Shown: positions 56,931 through 64,000, counted from the stretch's first letter. The stretch: DNA of 64,000 nucleotides from Entomortierella parvispora E1425 (GCA_020891255.1 BQFW01000014.1:1240001-1304000); one strand, 5' to 3'. Program-made: numbers and translations. Notes: generated by a model not told the origin, from the letters alone.

Positions 56931-59037
56931 ATGGTGCACAAGGGCATGGCCCACGACGACGATGAGCCACTGCTGCCTCTCATGGACCATGACTCTGTCC
57001 GAATGAAGGAGATTCACCAGACCCATCACAGCGATATTCTCAAGTCGACAAAGCTGTCAGGGTCAACTGCACATGATTCTATATCCTCATCAGGACCAGA
57101 AGACCCTGAGCATCCACACCACCATAATAATCATCATGACCACAGTCATGGACACAGCCATGGACACGCTGGAAGTCTTTCAAAAAGGCCTTCCAACTCT
57201 ATGGAAAGCAACGACGAGGATCAAATGTATCTTGCAGAGGATCACGACGATGACGACGAGCCACTGTCGCTTGAAGCCCTCAAGGCAGCAGCAAAGGACA
57301 AGATGAGACTCAAGATTGCCATTGGACTTTGTTCAACGTTTTTCTGCGTGGAGTTGGCTGGAGGTCTATGGTCAGAGTCACTAGCTCTTCTGAGCGACTC
57401 GTTTCATCTACTCACAGGTAACGGAGGCGAGCAGCGACGTGCTTTTAGTGCAGATGCGAACCGACAAAGTAGGCACCATACAGAGATGGACATTAATGCG
57501 CTCGCTTGCTTGCTTCCGAATAGACATCACATCGTTTATAATCTCGATGGCAGCCATCTACCTGTCTCATCAACCTCCAACAGCAACTCATACATTTGGA
57601 TACCATCGTGCCGAGGTTCTTGGAGCCCTCTTTTCTATCTTCTTGATCTGGGGCCTGACGTTACTACTTGTAATTGAGGCGTGTGATCGTGTACGACATC
57701 CAGTTGATGTGGATGGCAAAACAATGTCTGTCATTGCCGGTCTAGGAGTCTTTGTCAATGTCCTGTAAGTGGAAAACAGGAAACATGAGATGACACGGGA
57801 GCTCGGAATCTGTTTGCTGTTTTTGATATTAGAGACAAACGGGATATGGACTTACATTCCTATTTTTTTCTTCTCCCCCCCCCCCCTTAGTTTGATGTTT
57901 GTCCTTGGAGGACACCACCATCACCATGGAGACGATGACCATGAGCATGGACACGAACACGGGCATGGACATGACCATGCGCACGGACATGAACACGGGC
58001 ACGGGCACGGGCACGGCTCTGGTAGTCAGGACCATGATCCGTTACACAACGAGGAAGATAACGAACAGGATGATGACCTCGACCATGATCACAACGGACA
58101 CAAGGCTATTCCTCAGCATGATCACGACCATCATAACAGTGGCTCCTCAACACAAGCTCACAATCATCATCATCATCACCCTCATTCTCATGTCAATCTT
58201 AACATGACCGCCGCCACCCTGCATGTTCTCGGCGACCTATTGTCCTCCATCGGAGTCCTGATATCGTCCTTGGTGATCACCTTCTTTCCATCCATGACCT
58301 ATTTGGATCCAATTTGTACTTTTATCTTTTCTATCCTGGTGATATGCACAACAATTGGGGTTTTCAAGCGCTCAGTCTCGATTCTGATGGAGCGCGTCCC
58401 TCAAGGCATTAACACGGAGGAGGTCCGAGAAGCTATCTGCGATATCCCTGGCGTGCTGGAGGTCAAGACCCTGCATATCTGGAGTCTTACAATCGGCCAG
58501 TCTGCCATGGCTGGAACTTTATACCTGCAGCCAGAGATCAAGGATGTTAAAAGGGCCTCCGCCATCGTAAAAAGAGCCAGGGCGATGTTGCGGACACGAT
58601 ATAGGATCCGGGAGTCGACCCTTCAGATAGAGATGTACGCTCCACATGGCAGATCTAGGGCTACTGCAGGGACGTCTGGACCATTGTCTTCCATATCTCT
58701 ACATCGACATGCGCCAGCAAGTTCCAGAAGCTCATTCTCCGGATCTACAGCAACAACAGCCATGAATGGAAGGACGACTGCGATAGATACATTAGCACGC
58801 CATGATCAGGATATCATCTTTTCTCTAGAGGATGAAAACGACCGCGACTATGACTTGGATCGTGGCTCTCACAGTTCGCACCTGCACGCTGATATTGATC
58901 GAGCAGGCACCCCTCTTAGCCGCTATAAAGAGAACCGGAGCGTCTTGACTCCAAACGAAGAGGACGAGAGTGAGGACGAGATGGAGCAAGAGACCATCCA
59001 GCTTCACCCAGAACAGCAGCCTCACCGATGGGCGTAA
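56931..59037 (+). CDS. Cation diffusion facilitator (ZnT/SLC30, ZRC1/COT1-like) zinc transporter, His-rich
   Basis: Introns 57418-57523 and 57765-57890; SLALLSDSFHLLTD, HTFGYHRAEVLGAL, NMTAATLHVLGDLLSSIGV, YLDPICT, TLHIWSLT motifs; His-rich N-terminus and loop. Confidence 0.93.
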
Positions 59038-59039
59038 TC

Positions 59040-59300
59040 TTGTGGACCATTGTCTGCATTACAGGGCCCCCTTATGCCGCCCCCCTCGAATGAGTGAGCA
59101 CGTGACAAGAAGACCCCACAGTGGTGTGTATTTCCGGATACACGAAATTTTGGTTTGAGACCATTAAAACTCCCTCGGCTTTTTGCTGAGGTCTTGGGGA
59201 CCGTCCGAGTGGGTTCTTCTCTTACGAAATAAAGGAGGAGAGCTGATACTGGTGCTCGTCCTTGCAGAACTGCCACTGGTGCTGCCACTTGCCATTGCCG
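59040..59300 (-). ncRNA. Candidate Fanzor omegaRNA (scaffold plus flank-derived guide); boundaries unknown
   Basis: Inferred from position at the 3' end of the Fanzor gene. Hairpins at 59173-59191 (CCTCAGC-AAAAA-GCCGAGG, 6/7 paired) and 59126-59143 (GTGTAT-CCGGAA-ATACAC); AAGACC/GGTCTT complementarity between 59195-59190 and 59115-59110. Confidence 0.4.
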
Positions 59301-60898
59301 GGCTGTCATTAGTTACAGTAGCTGCGTTGTTGCTAGAGTCGCTGATTCCACTTGCGGATGAAGTGGAGCCCACAGTCTTATCCTCCCAGGGGTAACGACC
59401 ATCGGCCGCCACTGGCTGCAAGTAACGTGGTCTGCTTTGGTGCTCCAAATGTCGCTGAGCAACATTCATCATATTTTGTGCCGCCATCACGTCCCTGTGA
59501 TAAAACCGTTGACAGTGCGGGCAATACAACTGGCGTAGGGTCACTTGAGCTACAAACTTTTCGCAGTTGGGGCACTTTTTTGAGGAGTAAAACTCGTTGA
59601 TCCCGACGACAATATACCCTAATGACCTCGCCTAGATAGTATCAGCAGGAGGATAGAATACATTAGTTATAATACCACGAACAGGGATTCACATTTCAAA
59701 CCGGTATACTTACCAGAGGTATAAAAAAGTCCAGGAAGGAAGAATGCAGCGAGGACAATCTGCCGGTGCTTTTGAATTGTCCAAGTCCCACGGCAATGAG
59801 GACGTGGTTTGTTGGTTTCCGATGCTCTCCTAGACTCCCTCCGACTATACCAAGTAGTCTGGCTGCAATGGCCTGAAACTCCATTTTCTGTGCCCGCCTC
59901 AGATCCCACTGGTGCTTCTTAAACCGGTGCCTCCTTCCTCCATAGAAGTTCAACAGACGCTCTTCCACTGTCCCCTCATCTCCCTCCACAAGGTGTGGGC
60001 CAACCTCTTTAGTCTGCAGGTATTTGTGGTAGTTGGCGACACTTGCTGAATGGCCACGAAGAGGCGGAAGACTCGACTCCATATCAGTGATTGATTGGGC
60101 TTGACCTTCTACTTTTGACCTCTTTTCTTCCTCTTGCCATCGTCTATGGCGGAAGGCTGGTTGGTAAGCGGCTTTTTGATTGACTGCGAGGTTGTAATGG
60201 GCGTGGGGGTCCTCGGGCAAATAGGCATACGCGCCTACAACAAACGCCTGCCCTGCGTCCAATGTCAATATTTTGACGTCTTTGGCTTTAGCGCCGGGAA
60301 ATAGGCGCTCGACATCATCTGAAGTTCGAATGACGTTGCGAATTTCAGTCAAGAAGTAGTCTGTACCCCCTAACGTACTTGTTATCCTTTCCGGCAGAAG
60401 GTCCGGGGAGAGCCTCCGGTATCGGACAGCTTGCAGCTCCTTCAGCTTAAACACCAACAGTTGAATTCCAAAGCCATCTGTCCGCACTATACCACGTGAG
60501 ATATAGCCGTCCTCATTGTACGACTTCGGATCGAATCCTGGTTGGTCAAACTGTTCCAGGTGCTCCCTAAGAGTTGCTATGGACTTCAACTTGATTTTGG
60601 CACGAGAGCTCGACCTTGCCTTTTTGCTACTGCTTGAGCTGATGTCTGCGATATAGTTGTTGATGAAAAAGCCTGGGGTCTTGGTCCCAATCCAGATCTG
60701 GATCTCGGGCAAGGTCCTGAAAAATCCATCCTTGCCAGCCAAATCCAGCAGGTTCTTCTTCAAAAGTCCTCCTCTCTTGTAAAAGAATCCTGCCAATTCG
60801 CGCTCGCTAAAATCGAGGTTTGGCTGGTCTGATGAGGTTATTGGGACGATTCGTCTGGGATTTGTAAGATGTTTGTTGAGGGCAAGATAGTTTTCAAT
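59164..60898 (-). CDS. Fanzor1-type RNA-guided RuvC endonuclease (TnpB-like), C-terminal part downstream of the Harbinger insertion
   Basis: Exons 60898-59714 and 59631-59164 (intron 59713-59632, GTAAGT..CTAG, phase 0). RuvC-I KILTLDAGQ, IAVGLGQF, RuvC-II GINEFYSSKK, zinc finger CPNC..CPHC, RuvC-III HRDVMAAQNM; bipartite NLS-like RKRRTHSDGPQDLSKKPR. Confidence 0.88.
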
Positions 60899-60933
60899 AG
60901 ACGTTTTTCGCAACCCGAAAACCACGCCCAATT
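60899..60933 (+). repeat. Harbinger left terminal inverted repeat
   Basis: AGACGTTTTTCGCAACCCGAAAACCACGCCCAATT. Confidence 0.93.
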
Positions 60934-61090
60934 TTACGTAAATAATCAAATAAAGAGGTTGGGTCATCAATTTAGCGAGGTTGAACTCTATTTCAACGTA
61001 AATTTCTGCTCAAAAGTACGCCGAGGGACGTTCTTTCTGAAGGAAAAACCGTGTGGCTTGTATGTGAAAAAAACGCGCATCGCGTTCGAG

Positions 61091-62404
61091 ATGAAGGCAG
61101 AACGCACTGATCCTTCTCATCCTCCCACCATCATGAACCACCTCGACGACAGGAATCAAGGGAATCTGGACCACTTTGATCTCAACCAAGGAATTAGGAA
61201 CACATCAAACGATACATCGCTGTCCAACATTGATTCTGGGGTCCATGCAGACGAGGCAAATGAGGGGACAGGAAATATGCCGGACGTAGCTGACGGCCTT
61301 CTTGCAATGGAAATTGAAGCCTCCACCGACATTATGAGCGTACCCATGGATAAACAGAGGAAATCCAAGCCATCATTTCGCGGGTTCCAGAGGAACGACA
61401 GGTTGCAGATAGAGCTTCTCAAGGTGTTGGAGGTTGTGAGGCCATTTGCGGCTGGCTATGGCAAGACAGAAGAGGCTTGGGGGTTGGTCGTTGTGCAGCT
61501 TCATCGCTATGATGACGATCAAGAGAAGGCAGGACAACCAAGAGTTTTTGAGGGCGTCACAACACGGACTTGTAGGGAGAACTGGAATGCCCTGTCCAAA
61601 GCCTATCAAGAATATGAACGTCGACGCAAGACGGGTACAGGAATCAACCCTGAGCTCACTGAGGTCCTAAAGTACAGCAAATCTGTATATGAGCATGAGC
61701 TTGCAGCTCGAGAGGCAAACTCGCAACGGAGCAATCAAAGGATGTTGGCAAGGGAACGCGTGGAAACCAATAAGGCGAATGGCTTAGAACTCTTGGAACG
61801 GTCTCGAGCTGGACCTCGGTATGCCCTGTCTTCAACATCAACCCCGAACTCGTCTCGATCTGCGTCCCCAAGCTCATCTCGATCCGGAACACCAACGCCA
61901 ACAACACCACGGCAACGACCACTGGATGTCATACTTAATGAACTGGAGTCAGACATACAGGATAATTCTTCGCCTTCGCCTACACAATCTGGTCGAATTT
62001 CATCTGGAACAGAGTCAGAGTCAAGTACTGCATCGCACCAGCCACGAACGCCTGCTCTGAAGAGAAAAACTGCTCAAGCCCAGTTGGTTTTGAACATGCA
62101 AGCTGCAATGGCAAATGGAGCGAAACAAGCAGAAATGCAGGAGCAACACTTCAAATTACAGGAGCAGCATCTCAATGAATGGAAGGAAGATCGTATCGAA
62201 AAAAGGAGGAGATTCCAGGAAAAGATGGAAGCGGAAGAAAGGCGACATCTTGCCCAGAGTGCTCAACAAGCTGAACTTTCCGCCTTTTTGAAGAATCAGT
62301 CGGAAGCGACCAAGATTCAGGCGGAGGCTGCAGCTAAGACGGCAGAGGCCCTCATGCTGCAAGCTAAGGCCTTCGCTGAAATGATGGCATCCTTCAAAAA
62401 ATGA
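61091..62404 (+). CDS. Harbinger Myb/SANT-like (trihelix) DNA-binding protein
   Basis: FQRNDRLQIELLKVLEVVRPFAAGYGKTEEAWGLVVVQL..TTRTCRENWNAL followed by a coiled-coil C-terminus; start may be 61091 or a later ATG. Confidence 0.82.
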   Translation: MKAERTDPSHPPTIMNHLDDRNQGNLDHFDLNQGIRNTSNDTSLSNIDSGVHADEANEGTGNMPDVADGLLAMEIEASTDIMSVPMDKQRKSKPSFRGFQRNDRLQIELLKVLEVVRPFAAGYGKTEEAWGLVVVQLHRYDDDQEKAGQPRVFEGVTTRTCRENWNALSKAYQEYERRRKTGTGINPELTEVLKYSKSVYEHELAAREANSQRSNQRMLARERVETNKANGLELLERSRAGPRYALSSTSTPNSSRSASPSSSRSGTPTPTTPRQRPLDVILNELESDIQDNSSPSPTQSGRISSGTESESSTASHQPRTPALKRKTAQAQLVLNMQAAMANGAKQAEMQEQHFKLQEQHLNEWKEDRIEKRRRFQEKMEAEERRHLAQSAQQAELSAFLKNQSEATKIQAEAAAKTAEALMLQAKAFAEMMASFKK

Positions 62405-62445
62405 CTTTGACATGCTACAGTTCTTCATTGTAATATAATTTTATC

Positions 62446-63669
62446 TCAAAATAAAACGTTTCTCATTGCTGCTGCACTAATGTACTCTTGTACTGTGGGA
62501 GGATTGATATTGAAATATGTGTTCACCTCTCCACCATTGTAGCATGTGTGGATATTGGAAAACAACGCTGCGAATCTATAGTGACCTTCGATCCATGTGG
62601 ACAGGAGTCGATGAGTCCGAGGAAAGTCAATTCCCATGAACTGTTGCGTGATGTGTTTGAAGGTCCACTCGATCGTGACACGTAGACTGGACATGACGCG
62701 GTTGAATGCGATCTGGTCTGGAGTCAGTCCGTTTCCTCGATAGCCGATCAAAACGTGGCCATTGGCGGTGTAGGCCGAGTCTCCATATATTGCAAGAGCG
62801 ACACCGTTCTGATCATACGCAAACTGATCCAGGACTTGCTGAAATCCTGTGCCATCGAATATAGTCATATCGTGGTTGGTTCCTGAGAAGGCTGAGCTGA
62901 GGTGCAAGAGAATTCCATCCGGAGCAACAATCCCTTGATACTTAACGCAATGATGGCACTTGTGTCCACTGTACATCGCCTGCTGATTAATAGTGGGCAT
63001 TTGTATCTCTCGAGCTGTTCCATCGACGAAAGCGAAGACGTTGTTGCACTGTCCTCCGCTGGCATGGTAACAAGCATCGGCATACTCGCTCAACTTCTCC
63101 CTGGTCAAGCGATGTTCGTCCCAATACAAAAGTCGATCCCACCGCAGCATCACCCATCGAACAATCTGATTTATCAGCCGAGATATCGAGGGAGCAGATC
63201 GTCTAAACATACGCTCCATGCGGTTAAGGCGTTCCGGGAATGACAAGCGATACATCGCCATACATAGAACTGTGAGTGAGTCGACTTTGTCCCTGGATGG
63301 CGTGACAATAAATGGAGGGATCCTTAGCAGACCTATTATCTCCTGTAGTTGCGCACACGTAAAGCGGAACTCTTGGATTGAATAGGTGTCTGAATAAGCC
63401 CGAACGTCGAACGAATGGTCCAGAGGAAAAGGTCGTATTGGTCGAGGAGCATCCTGTTCCTCTGCCTCGTCATCCTGCTCGTCCTCGTCCTCTTCTTGTT
63501 GGTTGAGGATAAAATCCGGATCTAGGAGGCGATACTCAATAGCTTGGTGCGCCAATCCCATTAACAGAGCAAGGTTATACATGTAGCTTGGGTGATTGGA
63601 CGACCTTCGGTGGCCACCAGTGGCAAGTCGGGTGGGTGGACATAGATGTCTCCATGTCGAACTCGACAT
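62446..63669 (-). CDS. Harbinger DDE transposase/nuclease (DDE_Tnp_4, HARBI1-like)
   Basis: FRFTCAQL, HTH region YRLSFPERL..FRRSAPSISR, FAFVDGT, YSGHKCHHCVKYQGIVAPDG, GTNHD, IYGDSAY, FNRVMSSLRVTIEWTF; intact 407-aa ORF. Confidence 0.93.
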   Translation of the reverse strand: MSSSTWRHLCPPTRLATGGHRRSSNHPSYMYNLALLMGLAHQAIEYRLLDPDFILNQQEEDEDEQDDEAEEQDAPRPIRPFPLDHSFDVRAYSDTYSIQEFRFTCAQLQEIIGLLRIPPFIVTPSRDKVDSLTVLCMAMYRLSFPERLNRMERMFRRSAPSISRLINQIVRWVMLRWDRLLYWDEHRLTREKLSEYADACYHASGGQCNNVFAFVDGTAREIQMPTINQQAMYSGHKCHHCVKYQGIVAPDGILLHLSSAFSGTNHDMTIFDGTGFQQVLDQFAYDQNGVALAIYGDSAYTANGHVLIGYRGNGLTPDQIAFNRVMSSLRVTIEWTFKHITQQFMGIDFPRTHRLLSTWIEGHYRFAALFSNIHTCYNGGEVNTYFNINPPTVQEYISAAAMRNVLF

Positions 63670-63792
63670 CAGAACGATCAGATCGAAATCGAAGTCACGA
63701 GATATTCTTAAGGGGAGAAGACCTCCATTTATGAGAAAAAACCTTTTTAATTAGAAACAAAATCAGGCTTCTAAGCCACACCCATGCCGTTC

Positions 63793-63827
63793 AATTGGGC
63801 GTGATTTTCGGGCTGCGAAAAACATCT
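63793..63827 (-). repeat. Harbinger right terminal inverted repeat
   Basis: AATTGGGCGTGATTTTCGGGCTGCGAAAAACATCT is the reverse complement of the left TIR with 3 mismatches. Confidence 0.93.
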
Positions 63828-63830
63828 AAT

Positions 63831-64000
63831 GGCTGACACGTCCCCTCGAATTTGAATGTCCGCCATCGATACTGCCAAAAGGCCTTTGCCCAGTTGCGCC
63901 GCCAACTAAAATTAGTCAAGGATCAAGAATTAGTGGGACTGTTATCATGGTTTTTGAACAACGGAAGCCATGGTGTGCATGTATTACGCACTTGTGCACA
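63831..64000 (-). CDS. Fanzor upstream segment: exon 63905-63831, intron 63991-63906, further exon(s) outside the window
   Basis: LAAQLGKGLLAVSMADIQIRGDVSA is in frame with the TSD codon ATT (Ile) and ENYLALNKHL at 60895. It is preceded by GACTAAT-TTTAG (branch and acceptor) and a GTGCGT donor at 63991. Confidence 0.75.

Follow-up and report, generated by a model that had tools for sequence, protein, structure and literature searches.

A Fanzor1-type nuclease gene copy of Entomortierella parvispora split by a Harbinger transposon, and its relatives with an EXO1/FEN1-like module

Gene organisation at the locus

A 64,000-nt stretch of the Entomortierella parvispora E1425 genome (GCA_020891255.1, BQFW01000014.1:1240001-1304000), hereafter the window, was analysed with regard to a minus-strand nuclease gene at its end. 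The original prediction had described positions 59164-64000 as a spliced locus of a Fanzor1, a eukaryotic RNA-guided nuclease related to TnpB and Cas12. According to our analysis, the window very probably covers two-thirds, from the 3' side, of one copy of a Fanzor1-type gene that belongs to a multi-copy mobile element; this copy is split by a Harbinger transposon, and intact members of the family would be RNA-guided and fused to an EXO1-like nuclease. Two public DNA contig sets with the same species label as the window, X1 and X3, were used for comparison. Since its flank contigs match the window without differences, X1 is probably the source strain. The parts of the gene, in the direction of reading, are as follows:

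63992-64000, minus strand: end of an upstream exon (last 9 nt, Cys-Ala-Gln), where the gene leaves the window
63906-63991, minus strand: probable 86-nt intron, GTGCGT...CTAATTTTAG, with GT..AG ends and a CTAAT branch-like site
63828-63905, minus strand: exon segment before the insertion, encoding LAAQLGKGLLAVSMADIQIRGDVSAI; its last codon is one copy of the target duplication
59714-60898, minus strand: remainder of the interrupted exon, IENYLALN...FLDFFIPL, 393 open codons, homologs at no more than 64% identity
59632-59713, minus strand: 82-nt intron separating RuvC-I/REC from RuvC-II/zinc ribbon/RuvC-III
59164-59631, minus strand: last exon, with the relocated Glu, zinc ribbon, RuvC-III Asp, a Ser/Thr-rich tail and the stop TAA (59164-59166)

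Both minus-strand ORFs from which the gene had been predicted, 59696-60970 and 59164-59544, are present in the ORF track of the window. In the DNA reading, the intron between them (59713-59632) starts with GTAAGT, ends with CTAG and contains a branch-like ACTAAT site. Its removal gives the in-frame joint ...SSFLDFFIPL / ARSLGYIVVGINEFYSSKKCPNCEKFVAQVTLRQLYCPHCQRFYHRDVMAAQNM... (in shorter form, ...FLDFFIPL / ARSLGYIVVGINEFYSSKKCPNC...), and with the intron retained the frame stops 5 codons into it. In the alignment, the annotated homologs P0015, P0018 and P0025 are continuous across the junction, and tblastn showed a gap of 80-95 nt at this position in four related loci (L001, L002, L003 and L007). 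These comparisons show a putative intron conserved before RuvC-II in the Fanzor family, and the predicted in-frame union of the two ORFs, with its GT..AG ends and conserved junction, stood up.

The motifs quoted in the prediction were all found. The RuvC-I Asp (codon 60257-60259) lies in TLDAGQ, the Gly at the canonical RuvC-II Glu position (59786-59788) in AVGLGQF, the relocated Glu (59593-59595) in GINEFYSSKK, and the RuvC-III Asp (59491-59493) in HRDVMAAQN; the CxxC..CxxC zinc ribbon consists of CPNC (59563-59574) and CPHC (59512-59523). The translated exons thus show the Asp / relocated Glu / Asp arrangement of a putative RuvC site. Exon 59714-60898 contains, besides the RuvC-I Asp and the canonical-site Gly, the WED motif RTDGF (60470-60484) and the region of the long helix seen in a homolog model.

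A profile search had been proposed as a check of the prediction, and the last exon passed it, matching Pfam PF07282 (Cas12f1-like_TNB, formerly OrfB_Zn_ribbon; E=4.5e-12, 46.4 bits, cutoff 26.3) and NCBIfam guided_TnpB ('RNA-guided endonuclease TnpB family'; 5.8e-8). For exon A, the profile search gave no Pfam match; this exon has about 98 homologs, all from Mortierellomycota, with E down to 1e-158 and a best identity of 64%. Because of the profile matches, the roughly 98 homologs and the conserved junction, the sequence observation is considered real and not a product of chance.

At the window's edge, the frame of the codons at 63992-64000 runs into the next exon, and these codons align with C-D-L-H-Q/K of P0018 and L002; an X3 contig retains TGCACAA/GT at the end of the same exon. 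The predicted run-off of the N-terminus beyond the window is in agreement with this. An in-frame TAG stands directly upstream of the exon start at 63905, and the L002 ORF breaks at the same place. The product of 63828-63905 aligns to ...KKGLL...IQIRGDVSAIENY of the homologs. The residues within the window number 26 + 393 + 155, i.e., about 575 aa, as had been predicted, but they do not form a contiguous product, because the Harbinger transposon lies between them.

Nested Harbinger transposon

The insertion comprises the following features:

60899-63827, no strand assigned: nested Harbinger/PIF transposon, 2,929 bp, with terminal inverted repeats at 60899-60938 and 63788-63827
62446-63669, minus strand: Harbinger transposase ORF, 407 aa (Pfam DDE_Tnp_4, E=1.4e-23; NCBIfam IS5-family transposase, 1e-9)
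61133-62404, plus strand: second Harbinger ORF, candidate Myb/SANT-like DNA-binding partner, in a position that fits the two-gene Harbinger layout

The transposon is flanked by AAT at 60896-60898 and 63828-63830 (a 3-bp target duplication), and its plus-strand junctions read GTTTTC-AAT-[AGACG...CATCT]-AAT-GGCTGA. The inverted repeat I1 pairs 60895-60938 with 63788-63831 (44 nt, 86%), and the repeat core occurs at only two sites in the window, with 0 expected by chance. The DDE_Tnp_4 transposase, the short terminal inverted repeats and the 3-bp duplication identify a Harbinger element, and the second, opposite-strand ORF is a further likeness to PIF/Harbinger transposons. The element differs in its duplication, which is AAT; the commonly cited Harbinger target duplication is TAA/TTA. 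The second ORF had no Pfam match, and the protein atlas returned Myb_DNA-bind_4 / Myb-SANT clusters at lead level (score 0.86-0.87, below 0.9; TM 0.33-0.48). Its Myb-like character is accordingly treated as a lead.

In homologs, the string conserved at the insertion point is ...IQIRGDVSAIENYLALN..., with the SAIENY motif. In the window, DIQIRGDVSAI is encoded at 63828-63905 and ENYLALN follows after 60895, the transposon separating SAI from ENY; when it is taken out together with one AAT, SAIENY is restored exactly. The upstream frame reading into the transposon meets a stop after 18 codons, and the total insert of 2,932 nt is not a multiple of three and is without GT..AG ends. Because Harbinger splits a coding exon, the reading shows a disrupted gene, from which no full-length protein can be made. 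The claim that removal of the 82-nt intron yields one protein does not survive this result.

The prediction had also called for uninterrupted genomic copies, and such copies were found both in the same genome and in a second strain. Contigs of both X1 and X3 join 60895 to 63828 with three shared letters, which is the empty site. The X3 empty-site form is a 3,985-nt contig at ~4x single-copy depth and ~95% identical to the window, and over 1.6 kb the coding sequence of the X3 copies is free of indels. The X1 empty-site joints belong to paralogous copies with frameshifting indels relative to the window copy. Five related loci (L001, L002, L003, L004 and L007) are likewise uninterrupted at this point. 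In view of the empty sites in X1 and X3 and the indels of the X1 paralogs, the window copy is read as a recently disrupted, otherwise open allele, with clean alleles existing within the species.

The interior of the Harbinger transposon has a depth of ~3-5x in X1, with stretches identical over 958 nt, and has no match at all in X3 contigs. Such a pattern suggests a transposon that differs between strains and was active or acquired not long ago. A 424-aa ORF of the ORF track starts at an in-frame TTG/ATG (60967-60970) inside the left end of the transposon, and a transcript starting in Harbinger could encode a truncated Fanzor without the part that matches SpuFz 1-265.

Sequence fingerprints of the nuclease

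The TnpB/Fanzor motif was given as D-x(125,275)-[TS][TS]-x-x-C4 zinc finger-x(5,50)-RD (Bao and Jurka 2013, PMC3627910), and the spliced window product contains it as D212-x196-SS-KK-CPNC-x13-CPHC-x5(QRFYH)-RD. The RuvC-II Glu of Fanzors precedes the first CxxC by six residues, and its canonical site is occupied by Gly or Pro (PMC10530073, PMC10711439). In the window product, E406 is followed by FYSSKK and C413, and Gly 369 (AVGLGQ) lies 37 residues upstream. The relocated Glu, named 'Ealt' in PMC10711439, aligns to E467 of ApmFNuc, in which the alternative Glu was found essential by experiment (E467A; PMC10530073). The predicted rearranged active site is therefore present, but it is not special to Fanzor1 as had been stated, since it is common to Fanzor1, Fanzor2 and some TnpBs (PMC10530073, PMC10711439).

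The 'TDG' motif of the WED domain and a pair of long, kinked REC2 helices are traits of Fanzor1 (PMC10711439). The former was found as RTDGF, with T, D and G nearly invariant or invariant across 14 relatives. RuvC-I of Fanzors is 'near exclusively' DPG, a wording that allows exceptions, and a RuvC-I to Glu spacing of 120-160 residues was used in the same work (PMC10711439), against 191 residues to the relocated Glu here. Because the DPG fingerprint is missing, the gene was assigned to a divergent fungal lineage of Fanzor1-type nucleases.

The two catalytic Asp, the relocated Glu and the four Cys have been retained in relatives of 40-65% identity. The family has 894 library representatives, 224 of them at E<=1e-30, and a metagenome scan for near copies found three loci at 39-50% identity, which served to compare architecture only. 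A search of the PDB by sequence matched only the zinc-ribbon/RuvC-III block. The last-exon block aligned with residues 459-512 of the mimivirus Fanzor2 9b0l (VVNVNEYLTTKTCSNC against VVGINEFYSSKKCPNC, E 0.003), and SpuFz1 appeared only at E=0.56. The choice between Fanzor1 and Fanzor2 was therefore settled by structure.

The last exon also contains a basic motif, RKRR...KKPR (59173-59226). A C-terminal basic pair is shared with L002: RKRR-x10-KKPREF in the window and RKRR-x9-KKKVKEF in L002 (4440-4517). By its sequence, the pair looks like a bipartite nuclear localisation signal. Published nuclear localisation signals of Fanzors are mostly N-terminal.

Structural similarity to Fanzor1 proteins

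An AlphaFold2 model was made for the natural homolog P0015, which is 55% identical to the window protein, from a 98-row alignment (pLDDT 84.5, pTM 0.81). According to Foldseek, the top 7 PDB matches are all Fanzor1 (four SpuFz entries, two PpFz and one GtFz; E=1e-9 to 5e-6), with SpuFz at E=1e-9 and the mimivirus Fanzor2 at rank 11; all PDB matches are Fanzor, Cas12 or TnpB. VIA-align placed model residues 7-491 onto SpuFz 266-633 (316 residues, Z 16.2) and gave Z 14.9 for PpFz and 11.2 for Fanzor2 (192 residues aligned). A comparison with SpuFz1, also proposed for the prediction, thus returned SpuFz as the best match. The model has a RuvC/RNase H fold, an inserted zinc ribbon and WED/REC lobes, and a 51-residue helix at 323-373, where REC2 is expected. 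The modelling shows the predicted window product as structurally closest to solved Fanzor1 proteins, and together with the Bao-Jurka motif, relocated Glu and TDG it bears out the assignment to a Fanzor1-type relative of TnpB.

The solved Fanzor1 proteins, namely SpuFz1 (PDB 8GKH, 9CEU-9CEZ), PpFz of Parasitella parasitica and GtFz of Guillardia theta, resemble the window gene product in overall fold, split RuvC with relocated Glu, C4 zinc ribbon, WED TDG and long helix, as well as in having a predicted eukaryotic intron and probably residing in a eukaryotic DNA transposon. The differences are a sequence identity of 13-18%, RuvC-I DAG in the window instead of DPG, the 191-residue spacing, and a ~300-residue EXO1/FEN1-like module with a long linker in front in the window family. 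In addition, the window copy is transposon-broken, and its family is known here from genes and models. Fanzor2 and IS607-type TnpB (ApmFz2 9B0L; ISDra2 TnpB 8H1J) share the RuvC-II/zinc ribbon/RuvC-III block in sequence, and Fanzor2 shares the relocated Glu. However, the structural match to Fanzor2 is weaker, the REC/WED regions of the window family are much larger, no serine recombinase was found near the window gene, and the gene has the TDG motif and long helix that are Fanzor1 traits (PMC10711439).

EXO1/FEN1-like module in relatives

Since the in-window part corresponds to about residues 266-633 of SpuFz (VIA-align of the P0015 model), the remaining part of the Fanzor module must be encoded further upstream. 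In the tree, L002 is the sister of the window copy (support 100/100; 64% identical). On the same strand of L002, an ORF starting MTMGLRGWFPF... with Pfam XPG_I above threshold is followed by a middle ORF of 504 codons and then by the Fanzor exons; the middle ORF includes the sequence at which shorter gene models begin (MKQYV.KPYKEPE...). The same colinear order of XPG, middle region and Fanzor was found in L001 (an Entomortierella parvispora assembly), L004 and L007.

A phmmer search found the EXO1/FEN1-like module in 18 retrieved proteins, at least 13 of which, long gene models of 765-1310 aa, contain the Fanzor part as well; two of the fused models are named 'Rad2 nuclease' in GenBank. The acidic motifs of the FEN superfamily are kept in the alignment (MG.xGLW, YVDG..EK, TEAD, DSD.L.Y and NDY). 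The model of residues 1-300 of P0111 (pLDDT 92) has human EXO1 as its best match (TM 0.71, E=4e-12), followed by FEN1, Rad2 and XPG.

In the tree, module-bearing rows are spread over all major clades and also stand on both sides of the window copy. Because the module occurs in all major clades, the EXO1/FEN1-Fanzor fusion looks ancestral to the family. The window copy most likely belongs to this fusion family, since its tree neighbours carry the upstream module. With regard to the original prediction, an off-window part of the gene was correctly expected, but it is probably not the Fanzor N-terminus alone.

The arrangement recalls engineered proteins. T5 exonuclease has been fused to CasMINI as 'exoCasMINI' (PMC12337685), and such fusions have been discussed for SpuFz1 (PMC13434818). 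In both the fungal and the exoCasMINI case, a PIN-like 5' nuclease of the FEN superfamily stands N-terminal to a TnpB-type nuclease in one polypeptide. The engineered fusions are artificial and contain an enzyme of phage T5, whereas the fungal ones are natural, have a eukaryotic EXO1/Rad2-like domain and are carried in transposons. In the searchable literature, no paper combining Fanzor with XPG, FEN1, EXO1 or Mortierellomycota genera was found.

Carrier element and its 3' end

The features past the stop codon are as follows:

59063-59163, minus strand: 3' untranslated end of the element, with a terminal repeat (59063-59100) and a terminal hairpin (59063-59117)
59042-59062, minus strand: flank outside the element, 5-27 nt beyond the stop codon of a zinc-transporter gene (see below); by position, a putative guide source

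The depth of the Fanzor gene-body contigs is ~2-4x that of the flank, and that of the terminal 35 nt ~4-10x; the rise to 4-10x falls at 59065-59094. The terminal repeat is shared by a larger number of copies than the gene body. Several contigs whose flanks are unrelated meet at 59062-59064, and the unique flank contig of X1 covers 30 nt of the repeat before it stops. Judged from the depth and from where the contigs end, the repeated unit has its 3' end at 59063 +/-1 nt. No common dinucleotide was found at the joints of the other copies (59062, 59063 and 59064). The X3 zinc-transporter contig diverges from the window at 59044, and the Fanzor element is apparently absent from this site in the X3 strain. 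From the depth, the contig ends, the differing flanks and the X3 divergence, it follows that the Fanzor gene lies within a mobile, polymorphic, multi-copy element. In the unlabelled runs X4 and X9, nothing of the Fanzor gene was found.

The stem of the terminal hairpin survives two X3 substitutions (C-G to U-G and G-U to A-U). Fanzor1 RNAs extend ~15 nt past the transposon end (PMC10711439), and 59063-59163 is regarded as the candidate end of a guide-RNA scaffold. The 3' regions of L001, L002, L006 and L007 are too diverged for a guide-RNA alignment.

One X1 contig tracks the window at 59150-59276 and then continues with AGGGCGGCATAAGGACGCCCAG..., which resembles the reverse complement of the terminal repeat at 59063-59085. 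This contig may represent a short, internally deleted derivative of the type of miniature inverted-repeat transposable elements, keeping the Fanzor 3' end between termini.

Evaluation of the explanations

A Harbinger-split, Fanzor1-type copy of a multi-copy mobile-element gene, with RNA-guided and EXO1-fused intact members, is the explanation that we consider well supported. Several points weigh against it. The N-terminal module of this copy would lie beyond 64000 and is deduced from relatives; L006 and L003, in whose available DNA the module is absent, show that it is missing from some relatives or that these are truncated. RuvC-I reads DAG (TLDAGQ) in the window and DAG, DLG or DGG in relatives. 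The predicted structure is that of a 55%-identical homolog and not of the window's own spliced product. The splicing and any guide RNA are predicted from DNA, the fold z-score of 59064-59330 is only -1.7, and the 3' region had no Rfam match. Finally, the activity of the family is predicted from homology.

An intact, expressible Fanzor1 gene, giving one functional nuclease after removal of the 82-nt intron alone, is extremely improbable. Its 393 + 155 open codons do include all catalytic and zinc residues, and the frameshifting indels that other copies in the same genome carry relative to it suggest that it was intact until recently. But the 2,929-bp transposon interrupts the exon, separating SAI from ENY in a conserved motif, and the upstream frame ends after 18 codons of transposon sequence. 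Harbinger as a spliceable insert was rejected, since ends other than GT..AG allow no clean splicing out, and the sole downstream in-frame start, ATG 60967, omits the N-terminal third of the Fanzor module (SpuFz 1-265). No more credible is a single composite transposon with the Fanzor as cargo of Harbinger, a structure that has been suspected for MCi-5 elements in Mucor (PMC3627910). The Harbinger transposase and the Fanzor do lie within 3 kb, and Harbinger transposases occur inside some Fanzor1 elements according to Bao and Jurka (PMC3627910); however, both inverted repeats and the 3-bp duplication are found within the Fanzor coding exon, the same Fanzor stands without Harbinger in X1 and X3, X3 has the Fanzor at ~4x with no match to the Harbinger interior, and the five related loci are uninterrupted here. 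Harbinger as the carrier of the Fanzor was rejected on account of the repeats within the exon and the Harbinger-free copies.

Somewhat less remote, though still unlikely, is that the whole family is a domesticated or decaying TnpB-like relic without RNA-guided activity, with the RuvC motif persisting by chance or serving another role such as regulation. RuvC-I is DAG or DLG instead of DPG, RNA guidance rests on family membership, and several copies in the same genome are frameshifted. Against this, relatives at 40-65% identity retain both Asp, the relocated Glu and the four Cys, the family is large (894 library representatives, 224 at E<=1e-30), copies are numerous, the insertion varies between strains, and X3 copies are free of coding indels over 1.6 kb. 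The retained residues, copy number, polymorphism and clean X3 copies therefore argue for an active mobile gene under selection for nuclease function.

Proposed mechanism and significance

RNA-guided, TAM-adjacent cutting has been described for Fanzors (PMC10530073, PMC10711439; TAM, target-adjacent motif), and we infer RNA guidance for the window family by membership. Intact members would bind an omega RNA that covers the ORF's 3' end and the terminal repeat, with the ~15-20 nt of flank beyond serving as the guide, and would cut matching DNA adjacent to a TAM. In the off-window N-terminus of the window copy, the Fanzor module would be joined to a 5' nuclease of EXO1/FEN1 type, as in its nearest relatives. 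We suggest that the EXO1-like module may resect the cut ends and bias repair toward homologous recombination, which might help the element to be kept or copied; engineered T5-exonuclease-Cas12f fusions offer a parallel (PMC12337685; PMC13434818). It may further be speculated, with considerable doubt, that the window copy is a recently silenced two-nuclease effector in which the RuvC cut would be passed to a built-in exonuclease, driving retention or homing. Harbinger would then act as a reversible off-switch, since clean excision at the AAT duplication would restore the frame.

Fanzors are, to our knowledge, the only known eukaryotic RNA-guided DNA nucleases. They are under development as compact genome editors, and since 2013 early-diverging fungi have been known to carry Fanzor1 genes. 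Taken by itself, the in-window part is one more, broken Fanzor1. New in the family are the RuvC-I DAG, the very large size and the EXO1/FEN1-like fusion, fused gene models of which are already in GenBank. The value of the window lies in its context, a large Mortierellomycota family (the 894 representatives) that departs from DPG. The natural fusion, present in many members of the family, matches a hand-built design, T5 exonuclease plus Cas12f, that was made to raise editing efficiency. The locus is also a dated natural experiment, with one strain Harbinger-split and the other Harbinger-free with ~4 clean copies; an X3-type strain is where intact, testable alleles could be cloned. The window thus adds a case of nested transposition and population-level evidence for the fusion family.

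Insertion site of the Fanzor element

The Fanzor element landed ~25 nt past the stop of a convergent, putative zinc-transporter gene. Inspected by eye, the region 56931-59037 (plus strand) is a His-rich gene resembling zinc transporters of the cation-diffusion-facilitator type, with the loop HHHHGDDDHEHGHEHGHGHDH...; it is split over several ORFs and probably contains introns. Between the X3 divergence point and the start of the element, 18 nt (59045-59062) are part of neither and could be filler, an indel between strains or a piece belonging to the insertion event.

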